This document shows, piece after piece, positions 21,445 to 64,000 of a stretch of DNA of 64,000 nt. Below the pieces are notes generated by a model that was not told where the DNA came from, made no database searches, and worked only from the letters and a program-made list of their open reading frames with translations. The stretch is from NCBI RefSeq assembly GCF_039654945.1, contig NW_027361810.1, positions 39,866,001 through 39,930,000 on the forward strand. Reading direction: 5' to 3'. Origin of the DNA: Dendrobates tinctorius (taxonomy: Eukaryota). How positions within the stretch are numbered: the stretch's first letter is position 1; each line of letters begins with the position of its first letter. A program made the translations under genes and the position numbers.

Positions 21445-22312
21445 TGTTATGAATGGGTCACCAAGGAGGATGGCAGGAACAGGCTAAGCCACCAGGAAAC
21501 CAGAGAGGTTGGTAACTCAGCGGATTGCAGACCCCTGATCCTAACAACACACTAGCAGTAGCCGTGGAGCGTACCTACGATGCCCTAGATGCCTCATCAC
21601 GGCTGGAGAACTAACTAAGCCTAAAGCCAGAAAGGTGAAATCTAAACTGCCCCAGAGCAGATCCCCAAAGGAATAGACAGTCCCCAAACATATATTGTCA
21701 GTGAGACAAGATGAGACACAAACATAGGCAGCAAATAGACTGAGCAAATGATGGGGCCCAAACTGTCTAGCTAGGACAGGACAGAAAAGATACTGTCTGC
21801 AATCACGCAAAAACCCTAAAAATCCAACACATCTGATATACAAAAAACCTGAGGCCACATGACCTCACCTCCGCTAGATCAGCACTCTGGTGTAAACTGG
21901 AAGCAAAGCAAAAGATACTAATATAACAGGGGACTGAACAAACTGACACAAGCTGTAACATATGGAGCGGGGCCCAGTGCTGCCCCCAGCAGGGAGAACG
22001 CAGAACCCTCGCAACAAAGCAGAAAGCACAACAAGGCACAACCAGATTAGATGCAAAGGATTAGCAAAAGAATCACTTAACTGAACCATGCAGATCCGGC
22101 AGGAGACTGAAGAGCTCAAAATGCACAAGGAGGAAAATCACCAGCAATCACCAAGGGAAGCCTGCTCACTTATATGCTCCCAGCCAGAAATCCCAGATTC
22201 CCAATCATCATCATCAGGTGGCAAACTTCCATCAGACTGGCCAGCTCCACTACTCCCAGTAACCACCAGAGGGAGCTCCAGCTCAGAAGTCTGAGCAAGG
22301 GAATTCACAACA
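21445..22312 (-). mobile_element. Solo LTR, related to 41955-42746 and 60585-62207
   Basis: TGTTATGAA...TTCACAACA termini; AGGTT flanking duplication; shared internal sequence. Confidence 0.8.
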
Positions 22313-27746: not shown

Positions 27747-28964
27747 TAACTGTACAGCTGCCCCATAATCTCGGCGCTCAGGCAGGACATTTCAGGAGTA
27801 CTCTGGATGATCATCAGCATGTGACCGCTGCTGCCAATCAGGACTGCTAATCAGCTGCAGCGTTCATATTCTGCCATGGTGTCTTACAACCCGGCTCCTT
27901 TGGGCTACCAGTGTGATGCACCCGATCCCATGCTGTTCTGTCCTAACATATGATGGGGATTTCTCACCAAGTGAGGAGCAGTAATTGGCACAGAAATCCT
28001 TATGGGGAGCAGCAGCCGGTGCTGAATCCAGGAGGTTTGGTCCCCAATGATCAGTCATAGACCATGAGGCTATGTTCCCAGGAGGAGCTTTTGGTGAGTT
28101 TGCAGATTTTCTGCCCCTATTTAGTAAATTAGGTTACTTGCATTTTTTAGTGCATTTTTACATCATGTGTATTTATCACGTTTTTGATGCTGCGGTTTTG
28201 GTCTCTTGATAAAGCTGATTTGTTTTTGATTTTTGCCAAAAGTTTATCCATATACTTAGCTGTGGATTACATATGTGTTGTTCTTCTTTTTGTGTGTGTG
28301 TGTGTTTTTTGCAGCAGAAATGCACTAAAGACACCATAGGTTTTCTACCTGCAGATTTTCCTCTGTAAATGCAACTCTATGGGGAAAATCTGCCCAGAAA
28401 AACTTTCCGCAAGGGAAATTGACACGTTTCATAATTGAAACCCGCACGGCAAGTCACTTTATGCTGAGTAGAGATAAGCGAGCCCAAACTTTAAAGTTCA
28501 GGGGACGTACTGGACACATAGTGTGTGATGCTGACGAGCGCGAGAAATGGAATTCAAACTCCAAATGTTTGGGTCCTCATTGAGTACAATAGGGTTCGGG
28601 TACAGTTCTGGTACCTGAACTTTGAACTAAAGTTTGGTAGGGTACCAGAACCCAAACTTCCATGTATCCGCTCATCCCTAATGGTGAGATTAAAAAAATA
28701 AATAAATACAAAAAACAAAAACCACAGACGGCAGGAGATCTCTAATACCGTCCACTTTGCTGGAACTGTAAGACGCTGCATTTTTGGCGCAGTGAAAATA
28801 CAGTATGTATCAAAGTCTCATTGTGGACACACCTCTGGTACACCTTTACGCCATGTTCCCATTTGCAAAAATGCAGTTTTGGGTTTTTTTTGTTTGTTTT
28901 TTTTTCTGCAGCTGTTGGGACAAAAATGAACAATAAAAATCTGCTCGGACTATTGTGGTATCTG

Positions 28965-30521
28965 TGTGGGGAGGAGGACCCCCATATAGTGTTTGGGCCG
29001 GAACCAAGGGGACCGCCATCAGAATTATTGAAGGAAGCACAAGAGGGGAATTACAAAGGGAGACATGCGACTGAGGTTGTCAGGGCAACAGGGGGAGGGG
29101 CTAGGGTAAAAGGAGCAGGGGACGCGCTGAAGTGGCAGTTGGGGAAGAGAGGGAGTGAAGGCAAGACGCAGGGTGACTTGCAGGGGCACCGAGAGGAGCC
29201 TGCGAGGAGAAAGCGACCGATTTACCGACAAGAGACGTGAGAGACTGTGCCCAGAGACTGCTCCCCGCTCCCGTTCTGAGAGAATTATCCCCGCTAACCC
29301 CCGCCTTGAAGGGAGAGGAACTATACCTCCGGTTGTGGCCGTGAGTACCGGTAACCAGGCCTCAGAGACCTGGGCCCTTCCCCCCAGCCTTCCCCCATCA
29401 CGCCGACCCGGCCATCATCGGCCTCAAGATACGCCACATTGTCACAGGCGGGATAAAAGGCTCGCTACCCTGGCTTAGGAAGAGACTCCTTGGTAAAGGA
29501 CGGCTACAGGCCTTTCTGGGGAACTGCGTCATCACCGCGCGCCACCTCCATCATTTACTTCAGGGCCCGTTGAGCCCCAGCGGCAGCGTTTTCTTCAGGG
29601 CCTGTTGTGCCCCAGCGGCAGCGTTATCTACAGGGCCTGTTGCGCCCCAACGTCCCCGTTTCCTTCAGGGCCTGTTGCGCCCCAGCGGCAGTGTTTCCTT
29701 CAGGGCCTGTTGCGCCCCAGCGGCAGCGTTACCTTCAGGGCCTGTTGCGCCCCAACGTCCCCGTTTCCTTCAGGGCCTGTTGCGCCCCAACGTCCTTGTT
29801 TTCTTCAGGGCTTGTTGCGCCCCAATGGTATTATTTTCTTCAGGGCCTGTTGCCCCCACCGACGTCACTTTCCTCAGGACAGCCGCCTCAGCGACCTCAA
29901 CACGGCCACACTACTGAACCCCGCAGTCCCTGGAAGGCTAAGTGAAGCTATATTTGGTTAAGTTTGTTGAGTCCCTGCGTGGACTGTTGATGTTGTTTCT
30001 TTAACCTTGTTTTGTTCAGCCTAGCCCATCGGCTAGAGTTATATAAACGTGATTTCGAAAACCACCATTCGTCTAGTGTCTCGTCACTGCATCCTGCCGA
30101 CTACGCCAAGTGTAGGGTCGGACAGGTTCGCAGGATGCAGTGACGAGACACTAGACGAATGGTGGTTTTCAAAATCACGTTTCGGGGGTTAGCGGGGATA
30201 ATTCTCTCAGAACGGGAGCGGGGAGCAGTCTCTGGGCACAGTCTCTCACGTCTCTTGTCGGTAAATCGGTTGCTTTCTCCTCGCAGGCTCCTCTCGGTGC
30301 CCCTGCAAGTCACCCTGCGTCTTGCCTTCACTCCCTCTCTTCCCCAACTGCCACTTCAGCGCGTCCCCTGCTCCTTTTACCCTAGCCCCTCCCCCTGTTG
30401 CCCTGACAACCTCAGTCGCATGTCTCCCTTTGTAATTCCCCTCTTGTGCTTCCTTCAATAACTCTGATGGCGGTCCCCTTGGTTCCGGCCCAAACACTAT
30501 ATGGGGGTCCTCCTCCCCACA
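28965..30521. mobile_element. Gypsy-LTR-derived fold-back element with inverted U3 ends and a central tRNA-Ser PBS
   Basis: TG...CA ends; 4-bp TSD TCTG; inverted arms 28965-29303/30183-30521 and 30045-30097/30130-30182; PBS at 30091-30108. Confidence 0.85.
29559..29860 (+). repeat. About 31-33-bp tandem repeat inside the LTR arm
   Basis: CTTCAGGGCCTGTTGCGCCCCA repeated about 9 times. Confidence 0.9.
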
Positions 30522-30827
30522 TCTGCTGCATTTTTTTACTACTTTTTCTCATTTTTTTTTTTAATCCACTTTTAGTGCAGAAACACTGAGACTCTGCACT
30601 TAAAAAACGCAACTGAATTTTTTACATTAAACTTACATATACAAGGAACTATAGTGACACCTAAATATCTGTAACCATGAGAAATTAGATTAATCGGTGC
30701 CAGCACGACAGCAGTACAACACACTTGGATCAATTGAAAGAACCAAAAAGAGAAGGGGGGGGGTGAGTAACCGTTTAATGGTATTTTTTTTATAAAAGGG
30801 TAAGTTTTGTAAAATAGCCTTTATTTA

Positions 30828-31278
30828 GGGCAGTTTCACACGTCCAGATAATTCCGGTACCGGAAAAACCGGTACTGGAGCTATCCGTGTCCGTGTGCAT
30901 ACGGAGGTCATCCGTGTGCTGTCCGTGTGCTATCCGTATGTCCGTGTGTACCATCCAAGTGCTGTCCGTGTGCTGTCCGTATGCTGTCCGTGTGTCCGTG
31001 TTTTTGAAAAATTATTTTTAATATTAACCCTTTGATTTTTTGTCCGTGTGCGGTACGTGTTTACACGGACCCATTGACTTGTATGGGTCCGTGTGATCCG
31101 TGCTGTTGCACAAAAACGGACATGTCAGCGTGTTTTGCACACGGACACACGGTCCGTGAAAACACGCTGACATCTGCATAGACACATTCATGAGAATGTG
31201 TCTACGTGTATCAGTGTCTCCGGTACGTGAGAAAACTGTCACTACACGTACCGGAGACACTGACGTGTGAAACTGCCC
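30828..31278. mobile_element. Harbinger-type MITE
   Basis: TIR GGGCAGTTTCACACGTC / GACGTGTGAAACTGCCC; TTA/TAA flanks; internal TCCGTG repeats. Confidence 0.88.
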
Positions 31279-34594: not shown

Positions 34595-34968
34595 AGGGGT
34601 TGTATCGGGACTTTTAACATTGATGGCCTATCCTTAGGATTGATCACCAATGTCTAAACCCGCCGATCAGCTGTTCCTGGGGCCGGCAGAGGGCGGAACT
34701 ACTCAGTTACAGAGTTGCATAGCACCGACTACGGAATAATGGCCACTTCTGGGTACTGCACATCCATCCCTTATTGATCTGAATATGGGACGGATGTGCA
34801 GTACCCGGCCACGGCCACTATACAGTTAATGCAGCTCCGTAACTGAACAGTTCCGACTGCCACCGACACTGGAAACAGCTCATTAGAGGGAGTGCCGGTT
34901 GTTGCACACCCACCGATCAGACATTGATGACTTATCCTAAGCCTAGGCTATCACATGTTAAAGCCCCT
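34595..34968. mobile_element. T2/Kolobok-type MITE
   Basis: TTAA-AGGGGTTG ... CCCCT-TTAA with internal inverted symmetry. Confidence 0.75.
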
Positions 34969-36271
34969 TTAAGAATACAAAGTCAATATTATTTATCATC
35001 TCTATTGAAATGATTTTTAATACTCTTCACTTGAAGGGGTTGGTGACTAATTTTTTATTGATGGCCTTTGGTTAGGATAGGCCATCAATAAATGATTGGT
35101 GGGGGTACGACACCTTGCAACCCCACCAGCAGTAGCCGAAAATTCACACAGCAGCTCTGTCAATGTGGTACTAGCAGGTACGCAGGATGCAGTGACGAGT
35201 CGCGAGACGATTTGGTGTTTTTGTAATAACGTTTATGGGCCTAGAGGTGACTTTCCTCAGGCTCGGCCTGACCGGCAAAAACGGGGAACACGGGTTGCCC
35301 TTGCAGGGGCTCAATACAAATAAACACAAACGATAGAACACAACTACTTCCGGCAATAGCCGGTCACTATAGGGCCACGGTATGGCCGACTATGGGTCCT
35401 TAATCATAAAGTCAACTTAGCCGTTCAGATGTCCCTCGCCGTTCGGATTGGTGGTCTGTCGGCGTAGTAGTTGCTGGGCCCAGTTGCTGAGACAATGGCG
35501 AAGTCTTCGCGCGCTCCGGCGCACTGATGACACTGAAGCCTCACAGGCTCCGGCGGGGTCCTTGGACGATTGGGCCGCAGCCCCCGGCTTGGGGCAAGCG
35601 GCAGCGATGGGTGGTGGCAGGTGACAGGCCACCTGCGCAGCCAACGGCTGCGACAGGGAGTCCGCTGTCAGCAGAGGCCCGGCCCCTGCTGCGGACCGGA
35701 GCGGGACAGTGATGGCCGCCGGCAGTGCTGTACTTGCCGCAGCCACTCGTGAGGACAGGGCGGCTGCCAGCAGCGGGGAACAGGCCACCGACATGGGCTC
35801 AGGAGGGATGGCAGCGGCCGTGGGTGACCGCGAGCAGGCCGCAGCCGCGGGCTGAGGGGAAGCAGCAGCGGCCGCGAGTTAGACTGGGGCCACAGTGGCT
35901 GCGGGCTGGAGCGGGGCAGCAAGTCCCAGATTGTCATCTGGAGTCCTCGGTGAGCGTCCTCCCTGGCACTGGTGAGTCGCTCTCCCTTGCAGCAGCTTCC
36001 ACTGTCTCCTGCTCTCTCTGTGTCGGTCTGCTGACTCATCGCCCCGGGAATTCCCCACCTTCTTTATATTGGTCCCTCCCCCAGCCCATCTGTCTGCCAC
36101 AGTGGTCCGTCCCTGAATCCTGTCCCCCGGGGACAGTTTACCCCGGAACCCAGATGACGGCTCCCATGGTTCCGGCCCGGGCACTCGACAGGGGCCGTTC
36201 CTCCCACACTCCCCTGCCTTGTATGCTCGCCAGTCCTCTGGCGAGGGTTTTTGTAGACTCGGACTAGTCTT

Positions 36272-39200
36272 TCAGGACGCCAGTCCTTGTCGCCATATGA
36301 ACTGGTCCTGTTCGTAACGTTCAGGGGGTTTGCCAGCTGTTGACCGCTCGGAGCGTCGAAGCTCGGGTATCATGGAGTCTTCTGGGGTGGTGGAGGGTGG
36401 TCGCATAGTGGGTTCTGGTGGGATGTCCGGGTCTACTGGAGTGCCACTACTGGGGCGACCCGCAGATGTGACGGGGGAGTCCTCTTCGTCATCCAGGCCC
36501 CAGACTGTGGGTAGGGGGTTGGGGACCTGGAGGGTCGGTTCGAGCTGCGGGAGATCGGTAGACGTACAAGGTCGCAACATGTTGCGAGGAAACAACTCGA
36601 GTGAGGTGCGTTGTCTCCTTCTGATTGTATTTCGTACACAGGCCCGTCGGGGCTTATTTGGCGCAACACTCAGTACGGATTCACCTCCCACCGTGGCTCT
36701 AACTTGTTTTGGGGACGTTGATCAAGTACGAGGACCCGATCCCCAGTCTGAAAGTCAATGGGTGGGGGCAGGGCTCCCCCCTGGTGTTCTAGATCCTGAA
36801 GTTTTGTGTGGACAATACGGTGAAGGGTCTGCAGCCAGTGCCGGTGGTTTCGGACCCACGAGGATACCCCGGTCCAGGGTAGGGGCTCCTCCAGGTTCAA
36901 CTCCACCTCAGTAATTCCTTTGCCTTCCCGTCCGAACAACAATGAGTAGGGGGTGTAACCAGTCACTCGATGCACCCGATTGTTGTATACCCACACCAGC
37001 TCGGGGACATATTCAGGCCAGCGGGCCTTGCGGTCGCTCTCTAGAGTATGCAGCATTTGGATTAGCGTGCGATTGAATCGTTCGCAGGCTCCGTTTCCCT
37101 GCGGGTGGTACGGCCTAGTCCTCGACTTATCGATGCCGTAAAAATGGTGTAGCTCTTCCATGACTTTTCCTAGGAAGCATGCTCCTTGGTCCGAATGTAT
37201 CCGTTGTGGACAGCCGTACACTTGAATAAAGTTCTTACAAATCGCATAGGCGGCCGACTCCGCTGTTTGGTCTCGAGTGGGGGTGACCACGGCGAATTTG
37301 GTGAAATGGTCCACCATAACGAGACAATGTTCATACCCCTGATAGGCCGGACCTATAGTCAGATAGTCCACCGTAAGAAGCTCCAGAGGGGCTGATGTTA
37401 CGATAGTTTGCACCGGGGCTCGTTGCGCGGGGGGGGTTTAGTGAGCTCGCACGGGCAGCAGGTTCGACAAACTTCTTCTACAGCAGCGTGCAAGCGTGGG
37501 TGGTATGCTATCTGCTGCAACCATTGTAAAGTCTTTTGAGCCCCAAAATGAGCTCCCTTCTCGTGGGCTTCCCGGGCCAGTTGGTTGAGATGGGCTCCCG
37601 GCACGATCACCTGCCATATTGTAGCCGACCCTGGTTCGTGACACGGCTTTTTGATACAAAAGTTCCTTTTTGATGATTAGTCTTTCCCACTGGCGCAACA
37701 TTAGCAACATATCTTGGGTTAAAGCCTGTCTCTGTGAGCCCATGGGCAATTTGCTGGTGGCCACCCATCGGCGCAGGAGTCCAACTTCTGTATCTTCCTG
37801 TTGCTGTTGAATCCATTTGTCACGGGGCTGTTCCAGCATCCTTCCTAGGAGCCCTGGATGAGGCACTTCCTGCGTGTTGACTGTAGGTGCGGCGGGGGTG
37901 ACGGCGAACGGCGTCTCGTCTGTTTCTAATTTGTTGTCTCGACTTCGCCCTGGGGTGGGGTGTCGGATTCTGGAGAGCGCGTCGGCGTGCACGTTTTCAG
38001 CACCCCGTTTGTAGTTGATCTTATACTTGAATTTGGCCATCTGAGCCACCCACCACTGCTCCAGGGCCCCCAGTTTGGCATTCTCCAAATGGGCTAATGG
38101 GTTATCGGTCCGCACTACTACTTCGGAGCCCGCCAGGTACTCTGCGAATCGTTCCATCATTGCCCACACTACCGCGAGGAGCTCGAGCTTAAAGGAGCTG
38201 TAATTGTCCGGGTTATGTTCTGAGTCGTGCAGTGACCGGCTACCGTAGGCGATCACTTTCTCCCGGCCGTCCTGCACCTGTGACAACACAGCTCCTAGTC
38301 CCTGAAGGCTCCCGTCGGTATGTAGGATGAATGGTTGTGAGAAATCCGCATATGCCAATACCGGGGTGTCCGAGAGTGCAGCCTTAAGATCTTGAAACGC
38401 ATCCTCTTGCGGTTGCTGCCACTGGATCTTCCGACCATTCGCCCCAGCGGGAGCCCCCTTCAGCAGGTCCTGCAGGGCTCGAGCTCGGTGTGCAAAATTT
38501 TTCACGAACCGACGGTAGTAGCCGGCCAGCCCCAAGAAGGCCTGCACGTCCTTCACCATCTTGGGGGTAGGCCACCCCTGGACTGCAGCGACCTTTTCCA
38601 GGGATGGTCGGACACCTTCCGCCGAGACGTTATGCCCCAGGTACTCGATTTGGGTGCGGAACAGGTGGCATTTCTGGGGCTTTACCTTTAACCTGTACTT
38701 CTGCAGCCGGCCGGGCACCTGCCCCAACCGCTTCAGGTGGTCCTCGAACGTGGCGGAGTAGACGATAATATCATCCAGGTATTTCAACGTGTCTTCAAAG
38801 TTGAGGTCTCCTAGACACCGCTCCATCAACCGCTGGAAAGTTCCTGCCCAAACGGCATCCGATTGAACTCGAACAGTCCCATGGGAAGGATGAATGCCGT
38901 CTTGGCCCTGTCTTCCTCTGACATCGGCACCTGCCAGTACCCACTGTCCAGGTCAAGGGTTGAAAAGTACGTTGCGTTCCCCAGGGTGGACAGAGACTCT
39001 TCTATGCGGGGCAGTGGATACGAATCCTTGATGGTGCAGGCGTTCAACTTCCGATAATCCACGCAAAAACAAAAAGTGCCATCTTTCTTCCAAACCAGGA
39101 CAATAGGGGCTGCCCAAGGGCTTTGGCTCTCTCGTATGACCCCCTTCCGAAGCATTTGGGCTAACAGAGTTTTCACTTCCTGGTATAGCTGCGGTGGTAT

Positions 39201-41118
39201 TTGCCGATATCGCTCCCGGATGGGGGCCGCTCCTGCTGTGGGGATCCCATGCGTGATGGCCGTGGTACATCCAAAGTCGTCCTCGAGGCTGGCAAAGACA
39301 CTGTAAAATTGTCCGAGAATTGTCTCTACCTGGAGAAGTTGGGCTGGCGCTAGGCCGGAAAGTTCGGCCCGCATTCTCTCCAGGATGGCTCGACCTTTCT
39401 CCTGGGTCAAGGATACGGCAGTCTGTTGGGTTCGTACCGTTGCTGCCCAAGGATTTTCGGGCTGCACCTTCAACTTGACCGCGGGGTCCGGCAGCATCTC
39501 CTCCAATGGTCGTACTAGTTTGGCCATTTCGGCCTGGGGCTTCAGAGCGATATCCTGATCTTCCAGGTTGACACAACGTGCCAAAACAGTCCCCTCCCGC
39601 ACTGTGGCCAGGGAGCAGGCCACCAGGATGCCAGGGTGCAGGCGCTCCACGTAACATGGTTCCACCTGCACCTCCATGCCCTTCAGTGGTATCGGAGCGC
39701 GGATCGGCAAAGCTACCACCGTCTGCCCCGGAGGAAGCATGAGTGGGGAGCTCGACGGTGCGTTGACCTTGCCCAGCGCCTCACCCTCCTGACACTCCTG
39801 GAGCACTCACGCCTCCCGTACCAACCGCTGGAAGACCTGCCCCTGGGCCGTGCGAGAACCCCAGTGGCTCAGAGTCTCTTGTGTAGGTTCATTGAGGAGG
39901 AGGTGGCCGAACTCTCGTAGTACGTTCATACCCAGAATAACCGGATGTTTGCTGTTTGCATCTCCCTGGGTCAGGACCACTCCCCAGCGGCCGAGTGATT
40001 TGCCGCTTATTGAAATCTGCATCCAGGCTACTCCGACGACAGGAACTGGTAGCTGGTTGGCGGCTACCCACTTTATCACTGTTCCCCACTGAGGTCTCAC
40101 TGCTTCGGGAAAATATTGCCGAAAGTAAGTCTTTGGCATGGTCGTAACTTGCGATCCCGTATCTATTAGGCATCGCACGGCATGGCCTTCGATCTCTGCC
40201 CATACCACTGGGCACCGCGCGACCAAGTCTTCGTGACTTCCTCCACCCTGTGTGATGAGCTCCAGCTCCGGGCGGCGTCCCCCCGGCTCAGGGTCCTCTG
40301 CTCCTCTTGGCCAGCGGGGCAGGTTCCCCCTGGAACGTGGGCACTCCCGGGCGGAGCGTCCCAATTTTCCACTATCGCAACAGGCAAATGGTCGTGGGGA
40401 CTGACTTGGGTGGGGGCTACGATGTTTCATGCCTCCTTCACCCGGCCCTGGCCGACTCCTTGTGGCCGCTTTTTTGGCTTCGGCCAGTTCACCCTTAATA
40501 CTCTGCATCTCTTTCTTCAGCTCTCGTACCCAGTGGGGTTCGCTCAGGGCGTTTACGGATGCTTCGACACCGAGCCATCCCCATGGGAACCATCACCTCT
40601 TGCTCCTGCTCCCGAACCCATGCCTCCTTCCCTATCTCTGAAAAGGTCAGACGTGGGTCCACTTGCACTCGCTCTCGCAAAGCCTGTCTTGTCAGGGTGT
40701 CTCGTAACCCAATCACTAACATGGCTCCTAATGTTAAGTCCACGGTCCCCACGCCGACTCCGTCCTTCCTTTCAATGGCTAAAAACAGTTCCTGCAAAAC
40801 ATTCATATACTGGGTCACTGTTTCCCCCTCTTTCTGCATGCATCTAAACATCTGGGTTCTCAGTTCCCCCACATCGGTTGGGTCCCCATAGGCCTCTTCT
40901 AAGAGCTGTAACACCCGGACGAAGGTGTTGTGCTGCCCCCGGGGCCTCAACATTATGGTATCCCAGGCTTCCCCGTCCAATGCCATCAGGGCCACTTCTG
41001 CCTCTAGGTCAGGGGTAAGCGGGTGCATCCTGAATAACCCACGCATTCGCTCCGTCCAGTTCCACAGCATAGTATTGCTACCGGAGAACCTGGGTAGATT
41101 GCTTAGCATGACCCCCAA
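36272..41118 (-). pseudogene. Frameshifted gag-pol (gag, protease, RT, RNase H, integrase)
   Basis: LIDTGSQV protease; VDYRKLN and YLDD RT; TDGS RNase H; HSDQG and GNGACERFN integrase, split over six ORFs. Confidence 0.92.
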
Positions 41119-41163
41119 AGAAATGCTGGGCCGGGGCCCTCGTTGTCCGCGCTCGGAGACTGC

Positions 41164-41181
41164 ATCCTGCCGACTACGCCA
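41164..41181 (-). promoter_or_regulatory. Primer-binding site complementary to the tRNA-Ser 3' end
   Basis: TGGCGTAGTCGGCAGGAT is the complement of vertebrate tRNA-Ser ...ATCCTGCCGACTACG-CCA and starts 2 nt after the LTR CA. Confidence 0.9.
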
Positions 41182-41954
41182 AATGTGGTACTAGCAGGTA
41201 CGCAGGATGCAGTGACGAGTCGCGAGACGGTTTGGTGTTTTTGTAATAACGTTTATGGGCCTAGAGGTGACATTCCTCAGGCTCGGCCTGACCGGCAAAA
41301 AGGGGAAACACGGGTTGCCCTCACAGGGGCTCAATACAAATAAACACAAACGATAGAACAAACCAGTTGCTGAGACGATGGCGAAGTCTTCGCGTGCTCC
41401 GGCGCACTGATGACACTGGAGCCTCACAGGCTCCGACGGGGTCCTTGGACGATTGGGCCGCAGCCCCCGGCTTGGGGCAAGCGGCAGCGATGGGTGGTCG
41501 CGGGTGACAGGCCACCTGCGCAGCTAAAGGCTGCAATGGGGAGTCCGCGGTCAGCAGAGGCCCGGCCCCTGCCGCGGACCGGAGCGGGACAGTGATGGCT
41601 GCCGGCGGTGCTGCACTTGCCGCGGTCACTCATGAGGACAGGGCGGCTGCCGGCGGCAGGGAACAGGCCGCCGACGCGGGTTCAGGTGGGACGGCAGCGG
41701 CCGCAGGTGACCGCAAGCAGGCCGCAGCCGCTGGTTGAGGGGAAGCGGCAGCGGCCGCGGGTTTGACTGGGGCCGCAGTGGCCGCGGACTGGAGCGGGGC
41801 AGCAAGTCCCAGATAGTCGCCTCGGTACCGTCCCTCTGGAGTCCTCAGTGAGCGTCCTCCCTGGCACTGGTGAGTCGCTCTCCCTTGCAGCAGCTTCCAC
41901 TGTCTCCTGCTCTCTCTGTCGGTCTGCTGACTCATCGCCCTGGGAATTCCCCAC

Positions 41955-42746
41955 TGTTGTGAGTTCATTTTCCCCTCTGTCACTGAGGCCTGGTGAACTC
42001 CCTATTCTAGTGAAGGAAGGTAGTGAGCCTGATTATCAGGCACCTGGGACTAATGAAGACGATTGGCTGAGTGGAGTCACTGACTGGATTTAAGGCAGCC
42101 TACGCCCTTTCTGCCCTGCGGGTGATTTCTCTGTGGACTCTTGGACACCAGTCTTATTCCTGCTCTCCTAAAGCTAAGTTTTCTGTTTTGCCTTTTGCAT
42201 TTAAGATTTGCTTTTGTTTTTCTTGCTTTTTGGATTCTGCCACTCCCTGCTGGAGTGTGCAGTGTTCCGTTAGCTCTGTCTTCTGAAAGTACCTGAGTGA
42301 TGATTTAGTTTTTGAAGCTTAGTTGCTTCAGGGCCATTTTTATATCAGCTTGTTGGCTTTTGTCTCTGATAGGGTTTTGGCAGATTGCAGACAGCAGCCT
42401 TCCTATCCGTTCCTATCTAGGTAGTTTTTGGGCCCCGTCTTTGCTCAGCCTGTCTTTCTGTCTGTGTAAGTGTTTTCATCTTGCTTCACCGTCATTATAT
42501 GTGGGGGGCTGCCTATTGCTTTGGGGTCTGCTCTGGGGCAGATAGATTTCCCCTTTCCTTCTTTAGGCCTATGTATCTCTCCGGCTGTGATCGAGGGGTC
42601 TAGGTCATCGTAGGAACCCCCCACGGCTACTGCTAATTGTGTTGATAGGTTCAGGGGTCTGCAATCTGTTAGTTGCCAACTTCTCTAGTTTTCTGGACTT
42701 AGCTAGCATTTCTGTTTTTGCCTCCTACGATGACTCAATCATAACA
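41955..42746 (+). mobile_element. Solo LTR nested in the Gypsy 5' LTR
   Basis: TGTTGTGAG...CATAACA; CCCCAC duplication; absent from the sister LTR near 36053. Confidence 0.88.
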
Positions 42747-43221
42747 CCCCACCTTCTTTATATTGGTCCTTCCCCCAGCCCATCTGTCTGTCACAGTGGT
42801 CCATCCCTGAATCCTGTCCCCTGGGGACAGTTTCCCCGGAACCCAGATGACGACTCCCATGATTCTGGCCCGGGCACTCAACGGGGGCCGTTCCTCCCAC
42901 ATCAAGACTTTAGTGGCCATGTCTCGGTACTGCAGGTCCACCCCATATTCAAATGAATAGGTAATGGAGGTACAGTACCCAGCCATGGCCACTTCAGTAA
43001 TGATGGAGCTGCTGTGTTCTGACAGCATATGAGAACTTCCTGTGCCAGACACAAGCTGATCGGCAGTGGTCTCCCCCCACCAATATATTGATGACCTATC
43101 CTAAACAAAGGCCATCAATAAAAAAAAATGAAGGTCAACCCCTTTTAAACTAGAGAACACATTGGGTTACATATTTCTCACTTAGATTGTGGTCCCGCCA
43201 TCTCTCCACAACAGTATAAGG

Positions 43222-60584: not shown

Positions 60585-62207
60585 TGTAATGAATGAGTCA
60601 CCGAAGGAGGAAAAAACAAAAATACAAGCTAAGTCCAGAAAACCAGAGAGGTTGGTAGCTACCGGATTGCAGACCCCTGATCCTATCCACAACAACTAAC
60701 AGTAGCCGTGGGGGGTTCCTACGATGCCCTAGACCCCTCGATCACAGCCGAAGAACTAAATAGGCCTAAAGAAAGAAAGGGGAAATCTAAACTGCCCCAC
60801 AGCAGACCCCAAAGCAATAGGCAGCCCCCAACATATAATGACGGTGAAGCAAGATGAAAACACTAACACAGATAGAAAGATAGGCTGAGCAAACGAGGGG
60901 GCCCAAGCTGACTAAAAAGGACAGGATAGAAAAGCTGCTGTCTGCAATCCGTAAAAAACCCTACCAAAAAATGTCCCAACCGTCTGATAGGAAAAACAGG
61001 CCCTGAAGTCGCTGGGACTTCAAAAAGACTATATCAGCTGTTATGAATGAGTCACCGTAGGAGGCAAAAACAGAAATACTAGCTAAGTCCAGAAAACCAG
61101 AGAAGTTGGCAACTATCGGATTGCAGACCCCTGAACCTAACAACAACTAGCAGTAGCCGTGGGGGGTTCCTACGGTGCCCTAGACTCCTCGATCACAGCC
61201 GGAGAACTACATAGCCTAAAGACAGAAAGGGAAATCTAAACTGCCCCAGAGCAGACCCCAAAGCAATAGCCAGCCCCCAACATATAATGATGGTGAAGCA
61301 AGATGAAAAAACACTCACACAGATAGAAAGATAGCTGAGCAAATGATGGGGCCCAAGCTAACTATATAGGACAGGATAGAAAAGCTGCTGTCTGCAATCC
61401 GCCAAAACCCTCTCAAAAACAAGAGCCAACAGACTGATAGGGAAAAAAGCCCTGAAGACGCTAGGCTTCAAAAAGACAATATCAGTACTCAGGTATTTTC
61501 TGAAGACAGAGCAAAAAGGAATTCAGCTCACCCAGCAGGGAAAGGCAGAAATCAGAAAAACAAGGAAAAACAAAACTAAAACACAAATGCAAAAAGCAGA
61601 GCAGAAAAACTTAGCTTTTGAGGAGCAGGAATCAGACTGGTCTCCAAGAATCCCTCAGAGAAATCACCCGCAAGGCAGAAGGGCGTCGGCTGCCTTATAT
61701 CCAGTCAGCAATTCCAGTCACCCAGTCATGATCATTCTGCTCAGGTGCTTTGTAATCAGCCTCACTACCTTCCTTCACCAGAAGAGGGAGTTCATCAGAC
61801 CTCAATGGTGAAAGGGAAAATGAACTCACAACAATCAGTACTCAGGTAAGTTCTGAAGACAGAGCAAAAAGACAAACTGATCAGAGACAAAAATGGAACT
61901 CAGCACACCCCCGACCGGGGATGGCTGAACTCCAAAAAACAAGGTAAACAAAACAAAACTATAAGTTCAATAGCAGAGCAAAAACTTATCTTTGGGAAGC
62001 AGGAATCAGACTGGTCTCCAAGAATCCAGCAGAGAAATCACCAGCGACTCAGAAGGGCGTCGGCTGCCTTATATCCAGTCAGAAATTCCTGTTACCCAGT
62101 CATCATCTACCAGATCAGGTGTTTGGTAATCAGCCTCACTACCTTCCCTCACCAGAAGAGGGAGTTCATCAGACATCGACGGTGAAGGGGAAAATGAACT
62201 CACAACA
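60585..62207 (-). mobile_element. Solo LTR containing a second solo LTR of the same family (61039-61833)
   Basis: Both have TGT...ACAACA ends; GAAGC(C) outer and ATCAG inner duplications. Confidence 0.88.
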
Positions 62208-64000
62208 GAAGCCTGGGTGAAAGATGGAGCTGAGCTAGAGTCCTGGGCAGCCCAGCCAGATGGGACGAGTGCCAGCTATGGATTCTGCAAGAAGGGCTGG
62301 CATGGCGTGGTGGAGTCGCAGTTTATGGTGTCAGCAGGAGGGGCTTGCATGGCTTGGTGGAGTGGCGACTATGGTGAGAGTTGCACTCAGCATGCTGGAC
62401 TTGGTTGCTGAAAGCTGGACTCAAGCATGCTGGACTTATTGGCAGAAAAGTTGGACTCAAGCATGCTGGCATTTTGGCAGAAGCTTGACTCATCTTTGGG
62501 ACTCTGTTTACTGGGCAGCTGCAACTGGTGGTGGACTCTGCTCCAAGGCTGCACTATGGTGATGGATCCAGTTATGGTGATGGATCCGGTTGGAGGAGAA
62601 GATGCACGCAGGTGGTGGGCTCTGTTGCTGGGAGCGTAAGCAACAGAGCAAAGCTAAGTGGTGTCCCCCTGTTTTGTCACTTTCCCTTATGTGTGTTTAG
62701 TGCAGTGGTGGGATTAGTTTCCGCACCGACCAATTCCCTAGTGAGGGTTTAGGTGCAGGGCGAGACAGGTTTGAGGTACGCGTGCGTCGCCCGATGCAGA
62801 ACCGGCATAGGGAACGTTAGGAGTGCAGGGACACTGGCTCAAGGGAGTACAGGAGGTCTCCACATCCCTATTCCCGATCGCAGGGCCCACCATTGTTATT
62901 GTTACCCAGGTTTCCCCTTTATTACCTAAATTCGCCAGTTGGAGGCGGTGTATCCAGCTGCACGTTTTATTTTAAATCGCCCTACAGAAGGCGGTGTATC
63001 CAGGGTCACGCGTGTCATGGGTTCGCCTTGCGGTACTCGCTGCGTCCAGACACACGTGACCATGACACTGGGCAAATGAAGCCAATGGCACCCCTTCCTT
63101 CCCTTCCTAACGTATCCCTGCACCCCTCCAGATGTGTTGTAATAAGTAGGTGCTGGGATGCAGTAACACAAATGCTGCAGAGCAGGGATCAACTATATTT
63201 TATTATTTAACAGTGGGAAAACTCCTCACAGGGAGATAGCAGGGTAAACAAAGAGTACAAAGGTCAAACTAAGTAAGAGTTGGTTAACTAAGCAGTCTCT
63301 TGTTAATGGTTTCACTTATCGTGACTCCGCAACCTGTCACTCGCTGAAGGTCTCGTGGGTAGCAGGATGCTGGTGGCAGTCGGTGTGGTGTCTGCTGGCG
63401 TCCTTGCCTAGCACATGGTCCTTCTTCTGGCGGCAGCGGTGGTCTTCGGTTTTGCACGCTGAGCCCCTAGTCTATATATCTGTGGAGTAAGAGAAGAGAG
63501 TAGAGCTCCCCACAAGATTCCTCTCGGCGTGGGTCTCCTTGAGTAGCCGCCGTGATCTGAAGGGCTGCGCTGCAATGCTTTACCCGATGTGCGCCTCTGG
63601 ATATCAGCCGACAACCGGACGTTCGTACTGCGATGCTCCGTTGATCGTACGCTCCCCTGCACACCCGCCGGTTTCGGTAAGGCCCTTTCTCTTCACGTCG
63701 CGATCTGTCGCTCCCCAGTGGTTGCAGTCTACTCCTCATTGGCATTCTGGCGGGAAGACCGCTTCAGTTGCCGTGCAACCCATTTTACCTCACATTGCCT
63801 GGCCACACCCCCTTCACCCTGGTTACCGGCTCGCTCCGGCTGCAATCTCGTTCCCCCCAGGAACTGGAGGTTCGGCCCCAGCAGTTCCAGACCCGTCGCT
63901 TCAGCAGCTGTAGCAGCCCAGTTCTCCCTTCTACAGTGTCACATAAGAAGCTCTGACCGCCACTTCCACTAGAATTGTTACATTTTTCACCAAGGCTTTA

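Follow-up and report, generated by a model that had tools for sequence, protein, structure and literature searches.

A near-palindromic insertion of 1.56 kb was found at positions 28965-30521 of the window, the 64,000-nt stretch of Dendrobates tinctorius DNA analyzed here (NCBI RefSeq assembly GCF_039654945.1, contig NW_027361810.1, positions 39,866,001 to 39,930,000). It consists of two head-to-head copies of one LTR, which meet at a tRNA-Ser PBS. The features of this fold-back element, and of the Ty3/Gypsy element with which we compared it, are given below; the labels U3, R and U5 on the fold-back arms are approximate.

28961-28964, no strand: left copy of the target-site duplication (TSD), TCTG (flank sequence)
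28965-30097, plus strand: full-length arm, a plus-orientation LTR from the U3 terminus TGTGGGGAGG to ...CACTGCATCCTGC
28965-29303, plus strand: left outer inverted-repeat arm, the first 339 nt of the LTR (repeat pair)
29304-30044, plus strand: 741-bp LTR segment present in the left arm only (repeat search and contigs)
30045-30097, plus strand: left inner inverted-repeat arm, R-U5 part (repeat pair)
30091-30097, plus strand: ATCCTGC, 7-nt overlap between the plus-orientation LTR and the PBS in reverse complement
30091-30108, minus strand: 18-nt PBS, TGGCGTAGTCGGCAGGAT, complementary to the 3' end of tRNA-Ser(AGA/UGA)
30098-30129, no strand: non-palindromic 32-nt core, made up on the minus strand of the final 19 nt of U5, CT and the first 11 nt of the PBS
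30109-30110, minus strand: CT spacer between the U5 end and the PBS (sequence reading)
30111-30521, minus strand: deleted arm, an LTR in minus orientation with the full U5 end (...CCGACCCTACA) and without the 741-bp segment
30522-30525, no strand: right copy of the target-site duplication, TCTG (flank sequence)
35164-42901, minus strand: Ty3/Gypsy comparator, separate from the fold-back element, with TSD TTGA, PBS at 41164-41181, and homologous U3 start and R-U5

A repeat search of the window resolved the palindrome into two pairs of inverted arms. Each outer arm (28965-29303 and 30183-30521) spans 339 nt, and the two are 99% identical, with 2 mismatches; the inner pair (30045-30097 and 30130-30182) measures 53 nt per arm and is 98% identical, with 1 mismatch and an interval of 32 nt between the arms. 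The three mismatches lie at 29024 and 29215 (outer arms) and at 30056 (inner arms) and amount to 0.8%; two of the three are CpG transitions in the right arm. That the arm differences are so few, and that two of them are CpG transitions, suggests that the event was fairly recent.

On the minus strand, the center reads ...CACTGCATCCTGC-GAACCTGTCCGACCCTACA-CT-TGGCGTAGTCGGCAGGAT-GCAGTGACGAG... or, in a second delimitation, ...GTCTCGTCACTGCATCCTGC-GAACCTGTCCGACCCTACA-CT-TGGCGTAGTCGGCAGGAT-GCAGTGACGAGAC... The order is thus the LTR end (ACA), a 2-base spacer, the 18-nt PBS, and then the same U5 in reverse complement, which overlaps the final 7 nt of the PBS. The full-length arm (28965-30097) lacks the final 19 nt of U5, and the U5 end at 30111 is TGTAG in reverse complement. 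The insertion starts with TGTGG (28965) and ends with CCACA (30521), in agreement with the TGTNR pattern. The flanks read ...GGTATCTG/TGTGGGG on the left and CCCCACA/TCTGCTG on the right, giving TCTG as a 4-bp duplication. The initial annotation had described inverted ends of about 340 bp, TG...CA termini, the TSD TCTG, and U5-ACA-CT-PBS running on into reversed U5, and both the repeat search and the reading of the sequence confirmed this structure.

No purine tract adjoins either arm. The left flank contains neither a purine tract nor internal sequence, and the left arm is therefore not the 3' LTR of an ordinary element. We found no internal region and no gag-pol between direct LTRs; the LTRs are inverted and there is no ORF of note. 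Since the fold-back element lacks a PPT, a 3' R and coding capacity, it would have been dead on arrival, unable to retrotranspose. No second copy of the element or of its LTR family was found within the window.

We placed Logan contigs from four runs, belonging to four studies, on the fold-back region; the results refer to the contigs listed, and the run with the best coverage is probably the assembly's own sample. In run X1, the depth over the LTR was in the thousands, compared with 5-10 in the unique flanks, a difference that marks the LTR as a high-copy family. In three other runs, contigs continued across 29303/29304 without interruption (records 10, 18 and 26), and contigs of other runs crossed 30044/30045 in the same way (records 23 and 30). 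The 741 bp are therefore part of the normal LTR, and it is the right arm that carries the deletion. Thus, the earlier observation that 741 bp (29304-30044) are absent from one arm was correct, and the family norm now identifies the deleted arm. Within the 741-bp segment, a 35-bp unit is repeated in tandem 8.7 times (29554-29858); a TATATAA motif lies at the right edge of the segment, and the deletion junction in the right arm (30182/30183) shows no microhomology. Contigs with unrelated flanks began at 30109-30111 and ended at 30521/30522, indicating that the termini of the family LTR are 30111 and 30521, where the initial annotation had placed them.

At the outer right border, an X1 contig at single-copy depth spanned 30495-30852 with no differences (record 8). 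It has 27 letters on the LTR side, and our rule for bridging called for at least 31 letters on each side. Among the contigs listed for the four runs, none crossed 30097/30098, 30129/30130 or 30182/30183, and none represented an empty-site joint. An exact-ORF look-up across the deletion junction returned nothing on record. Scans of metagenome and viral collections for the U5 end plus PBS, for the PBS plus GCAG and for the U5 motif plus PBS gave no match, and hence no parent copy or relative. The 35-bp array at 29554-29858 differed widely in repeat number and joints among contigs of other copies; its length varies within the LTR family. Directly to the right of the insertion, short tandem repeats (TCCGTGTGCTG-like units, e.g. 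30911-31000) occupy 30766-31100; their depth was very high in all runs, and they occurred in many length variants.

The PBS sequence occurs twice in the window, at 30091-30108 (minus) and in the leader of the Gypsy element at 41164-41181 (minus), with 0.03 occurrences expected by chance. In the fold-back element it lies two nucleotides after the LTR end (ACA-CT-TGGCGTAGTCGGCAGGAT); the Gypsy at 35164-42901 has TT where the fold-back element has the CT spacer. Plus-strand strong-stop DNA usually stops at tRNA position 58. The PBS is the exact complement of the final 18 nt of tRNA-Ser-AGA-1-1 and tRNA-Ser-TGA-2-1, the sequences of which are printed in PMC10359600, and by a count on the sequence given there the 18 complementary nt stop just short of position 58. 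We also observed that the final 18 nt of U5 (AACCTGTCCGACCCTACA, 30111-30129, minus) resemble the tRNA-Ser 3' end. A DNA fold pairs the U5 end with the PBS (30091-30108, minus), CCTG-CCGAC with GTCGG-CAGG.

The Gypsy at 35164-42901 has domains in Gypsy order: its Pfam matches are a PNMA-like Gag, protease, RT, RNase H and integrase. The first ∼60 nt and the last ∼75 nt of the fold-back LTR align with the LTRs of this element, and 19 nt, CTCGTCACTGCATCCTGCG, are identical in the two LTR families. The homology of the U3 start and of R-U5 indicates that the LTR from which the fold-back element was built is of the Ty3/Gypsy type and belongs to a related family. A likeness to this Gypsy in PBS and in TSD length had been pointed out before, and it holds: the PBS is the same, and the duplication there, TTGA, is also 4 bp long. 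A homologue search with the Gypsy gag ORF gave no match.

After the PBS, the Gypsy leader continues with GCAGT, and U5 ACTGCATCCTGC thereby pairs with GCAGGATGCAGT. This pairing of U5 with the PBS and the following 5 nt is perfect over 12 bp and lies inside a 23-bp interrupted stem. In an RNA fold of the leader (41125-41250, minus), the 23-bp interrupted U5:leader stem encloses the PBS, with a folding energy of -53.2 kcal/mol and z = -5.2. The leader thus has the appearance of a retrovirus-like extended PBS stem with an adjoining PAS-like motif that matches the complement of the tRNA-Ser T-arm at 8/9 positions.

Other features of the Gypsy element were noted in passing. Its 5' LTR (41182-42901) measures 1720 bp and its 3' LTR 1047 bp, with ∼800 bp extra at 41955-42746. 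The extra piece is 76-84% identical to 61039-61833, 60585-61036, 61892-62208 and 21445-21844, an identity which indicates nesting: a member of a different repeat family has inserted into the LTR. Short palindromic MITE-like repeats flank the element on both sides (34731-34826, 42900-43005, 35051-35103 and 43073-43125); they have the form ATTGATGGCCTATCC...GGCCATCAAT and are accompanied by a 45-52-nt hairpin unit.

The initial annotation had placed the switch between the two LTR copies where the last 7 nt of the PBS meet ATCCTGC in U5, and this was borne out. Within the 1133-nt arm, the join is the only place with ATCCTGC, and even the shorter ATCCT is found just once. The heptamer is complementary to the last 7 nt of the PBS copy (GCAGGAT), and the arm contains no other such site. 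Directly after ATCCTGC, the U5s of both the fold-back element and the Gypsy match the complement of tRNA-Ser positions 49-57 at 8/9 nt. In retroviral leaders, a segment of U5 pairs with the PBS region, and an adjoining 8-nt PAS motif complements the T-arm of the primer tRNA (PMC1865047). The same arrangement is present in the fold-back U5 and in the neighboring Gypsy. Accordingly, ATCCTGC would be no chance microhomology; in a conserved, extended PBS stem it would form the U5 strand, a function for the motif in this clade that we infer. The retroviral stem is a regulatory structure of the RNA, whereas in the fold-back element its DNA copy appears to have been the priming site. The conserved stem motif with its PAS-like neighbor suggests that this clade is built so as to permit the fold-back error.

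The position of the join also bears on the claim that the element arose from strong-stop DNA. A join within the last 7 nt of the PBS speaks for that origin, but the terminus is ambiguous, since the complementarity may run 5 nt past the PBS. Were GCAGT to follow the PBS in the parent leader as well, the switch could have occurred anywhere within 12 nt and as far as 5 nt past the strong-stop terminus.

The evidence supports the view that the fold-back element is a derivative of an LTR with two U3 termini and a 4-bp TSD. The 4-bp flank match taken alone has a probability of 1 in 256 by chance. The exact U3 termini, the duplication of the length characteristic of the clade, and the two different unique flanks together indicate one concerted integration of two U3 ends. 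We consider it probable that the locus represents a single integrase-mediated insertion of an aberrant RT product, namely an inverted dimer of a Ty3/Gypsy-type LTR with U3 attachment ends at both termini. Because plus-sense U3-R-U5-PBS is contiguous only in strong-stop DNA or its immediate extension, the dimer most likely arose at or just after the strong-stop stage.

In the proposed sequence of events, a plus-strand DNA that is the strong-stop product or slightly longer, with U3-R-U5 and a copy of the first 18 nt of the tRNA primer, would fail to undergo the second transfer. Its 3' end would instead anneal to ATCCTGC in a plus-sense U5 and be extended back to the U3 end. Most economically, two plus strands, for example from two co-packaged genomes, would each prime on the other through ATCCTGC/GCAGGAT. 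The product of such mutual priming would be a linear duplex that ends in U3 on both sides and has a 32-nt bubble at its center; integrase would insert this duplex in concert, and replication would resolve the bubble. The arms would have been identical at birth, and their three differences would have been gathered after insertion. The asymmetry of the arms requires an extra event under this reading. The 741-bp loss could stem from a deleted, co-packaged template, which would make the arms unequal from the start, or, more simply, from a later deletion in an unstable palindrome.

The initial annotation had offered two routes, a snap-back of strong-stop DNA on its own U5 or priming on another LTR. 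Of these, the version with two molecules fits better. A strand folded back on itself is a hairpin with one open end; it is not a two-ended substrate for integrase and its arms would be equal, and we therefore disfavor it. A strictly intramolecular snap-back would need an additional second-strand step. In a DNA fold of the last 92 nt of the model strong-stop strand, the PBS paired with the U5 end and left the 3' AT free, and the snap-back pairing was not preferred; thermodynamics alone thus lends no support to the intramolecular version.

Other histories might have left a similar locus. Two incomplete LTR duplexes, each a plus-strand strong-stop DNA on minus-strand DNA, might have been co-integrated and their inner ends joined by microhomology repair in the host. 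This would give an equal sequence outcome, with the join at 7 nt of homology at a PBS 3' overhang, and it permits arms that were unequal from the start, the 741 bp having been lost from one fragment. It is indistinguishable by sequence from the insertion of a ready-made dimer, but since it needs an intasome on two separate molecules followed by repair in the host nucleus, we regard it as unlikely. A history that dispenses with any aberrant RT product has two LTRs of the same family inserted independently head to head and then brought together by a deletion through the 7-12 nt of natural homology, the match of TCTG being coincidental. In a high-copy and apparently young family, two insertions 99% alike are conceivable, microhomology-mediated deletion is common, and the right arm already has one unrelated deletion of 741 bp. 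Such a course nevertheless needs a nearby pair in opposite orientation, a deletion of everything between them, including both far LTRs, and the 1/256 match of the outer flanks at exactly the duplication length of the clade. In addition, CpG transitions account for two of the three differences between the arms, a pattern to be expected of arms identical at birth. We judge it very improbable.

The initial annotation had suggested that the element, if multi-copy, would stand for a MITE-like class; membership in such an amplifying family of two-U3 elements seems to us slightly less credible still. The termini would fit, as TGTNR ends with a 4-bp TSD are common to Gypsy elements and Ginger DNA transposons (PMC2836005). 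Against this, the window contains no second copy, there is neither a PPT nor a 3' R, and the PBS is wrongly placed. Amplification of this kind is mechanistically unlikely and would require repeated independent formation; we know of no excision activity of integrase. An artefact of assembly or sequencing must also be weighed, because palindromic chimeras occur in long-read libraries and the contigs listed include no independent bridging read. An artefactual fold-back, however, would be centered arbitrarily and would mirror the flanking DNA, whereas here the arms end exactly at the U3 termini of the LTR. The two flanks are different and unique, the 4-bp duplication is present, the arms differ by the 741-bp deletion and 3 substitutions, and the pivot falls on the PBS. 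Moreover, the single-copy X1 contig enters the LTR end from the right flank over 27 nt, short of the 31 that the bridging rule calls for. An artefact is thus extremely unlikely.

Four further origins were considered and rejected. The inversion of one LTR within a normal element would need a breakpoint exactly at the border between LTR and TSD. A chromosomal palindrome formed from a break would mirror the flank, and autointegration yields circles. Membership in the DIRS group was rejected on the basis of the 4-bp TSD, the lack of a tyrosine recombinase and of a coding region, and the homology of the LTR to an integrase-type Gypsy.

DIRS elements have a tyrosine recombinase and an internal complementary region and are not known to make a TSD. 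As in the fold-back element, inverse LTRs bound a retroelement in DIRS retrotransposons (PMC3950715, PMC7192593); unlike them, the fold-back element has TG...CA ends, a tRNA PBS, a TSD and an LTR related to that of an integrase-encoding Gypsy. A TSD around an abnormal LTR complex is an accepted sign of the single integration of a template-switch product (PMC1950507). The complexes described by Sabot and Schulman in 2007 (PMC1950507) likewise have one TSD, derive from mis-made cDNA, and have near-identical outer LTRs. They are direct LTR-internal-LTR-internal-LTR arrays, whereas the fold-back element is an inverted dimer with no internal region, joined at the PBS; inverted forms are not mentioned in that report. 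In HIV-1, aberrant second (plus-strand) transfer, including read-through of tRNA-Lys3 (PMC12657518), involves the same failing step, and there too a PBS/tRNA copy marks the junction. The HIV-1 products, however, are internally deleted proviruses with normal U3...U5 ends, and inverted or palindromic products are not mentioned in that study. Ginger DNA transposons (PMC2836005) have TIRs with TGTNR termini, 4-bp TSDs and a Gypsy-like integrase. The fold-back element shares their type of ends and TSD, which is a resemblance only: Ginger encodes a transposase and moves as DNA, whereas the fold-back element is non-coding and shows no sign of excision or of further copies. A search of the accessible literature, mostly that outside subscription journals, found products of aberrant transfer and no description of an inverted two-U3 LTR insertion.

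The fold-back element looks like a rare molecular fossil of an RT error and not like a new kind of mobile element; it would define a new class only if recurrence were shown. Its value is mechanistic and comes from one locus. Integrated products record the mistakes that RT makes in vivo and the ends that integrase accepts. The locus would be natural evidence that a plus strand terminating at the PBS can prime on U5 in place of the second transfer, that a U3/U3 substrate can be inserted in concert in the germ line, and that a regulatory RNA stem (U5:PBS) carries a cost at the DNA stage. A broader proposal, that the tRNA-Ser-primed Gypsy elements of this genome repeatedly turn their LTRs into TIR-bounded elements inserted by integrase, by way of the conserved U5 strand of the PBS stem, is doubtful in our view. 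If such conversion did recur, the long hairpins could be a source of small RNAs that silence the parent family, and a route from the ends of LTR retrotransposons to Ginger-like TIR ends would be illustrated.

The central hairpin (30061-30164, minus) was also compared with Rfam. Its match to mir-9261 was full-length and reached 54.9 bits (E about 1e-10; gathering threshold 86), and ∼14 letters of the outer stem were identical. The hairpin matched mir-2066 (30.3 bits, threshold 70) and mir-2067 (26.7 bits, threshold 100) less well, and these two matches share CUGCAUCCUGC; all three miRNA families scored below the gathering threshold on this hairpin. Such similarity may be no more than what any perfect hairpin would show; alternatively, it may point to an origin of some annotated miRNA precursors as fold-backs of TEs.
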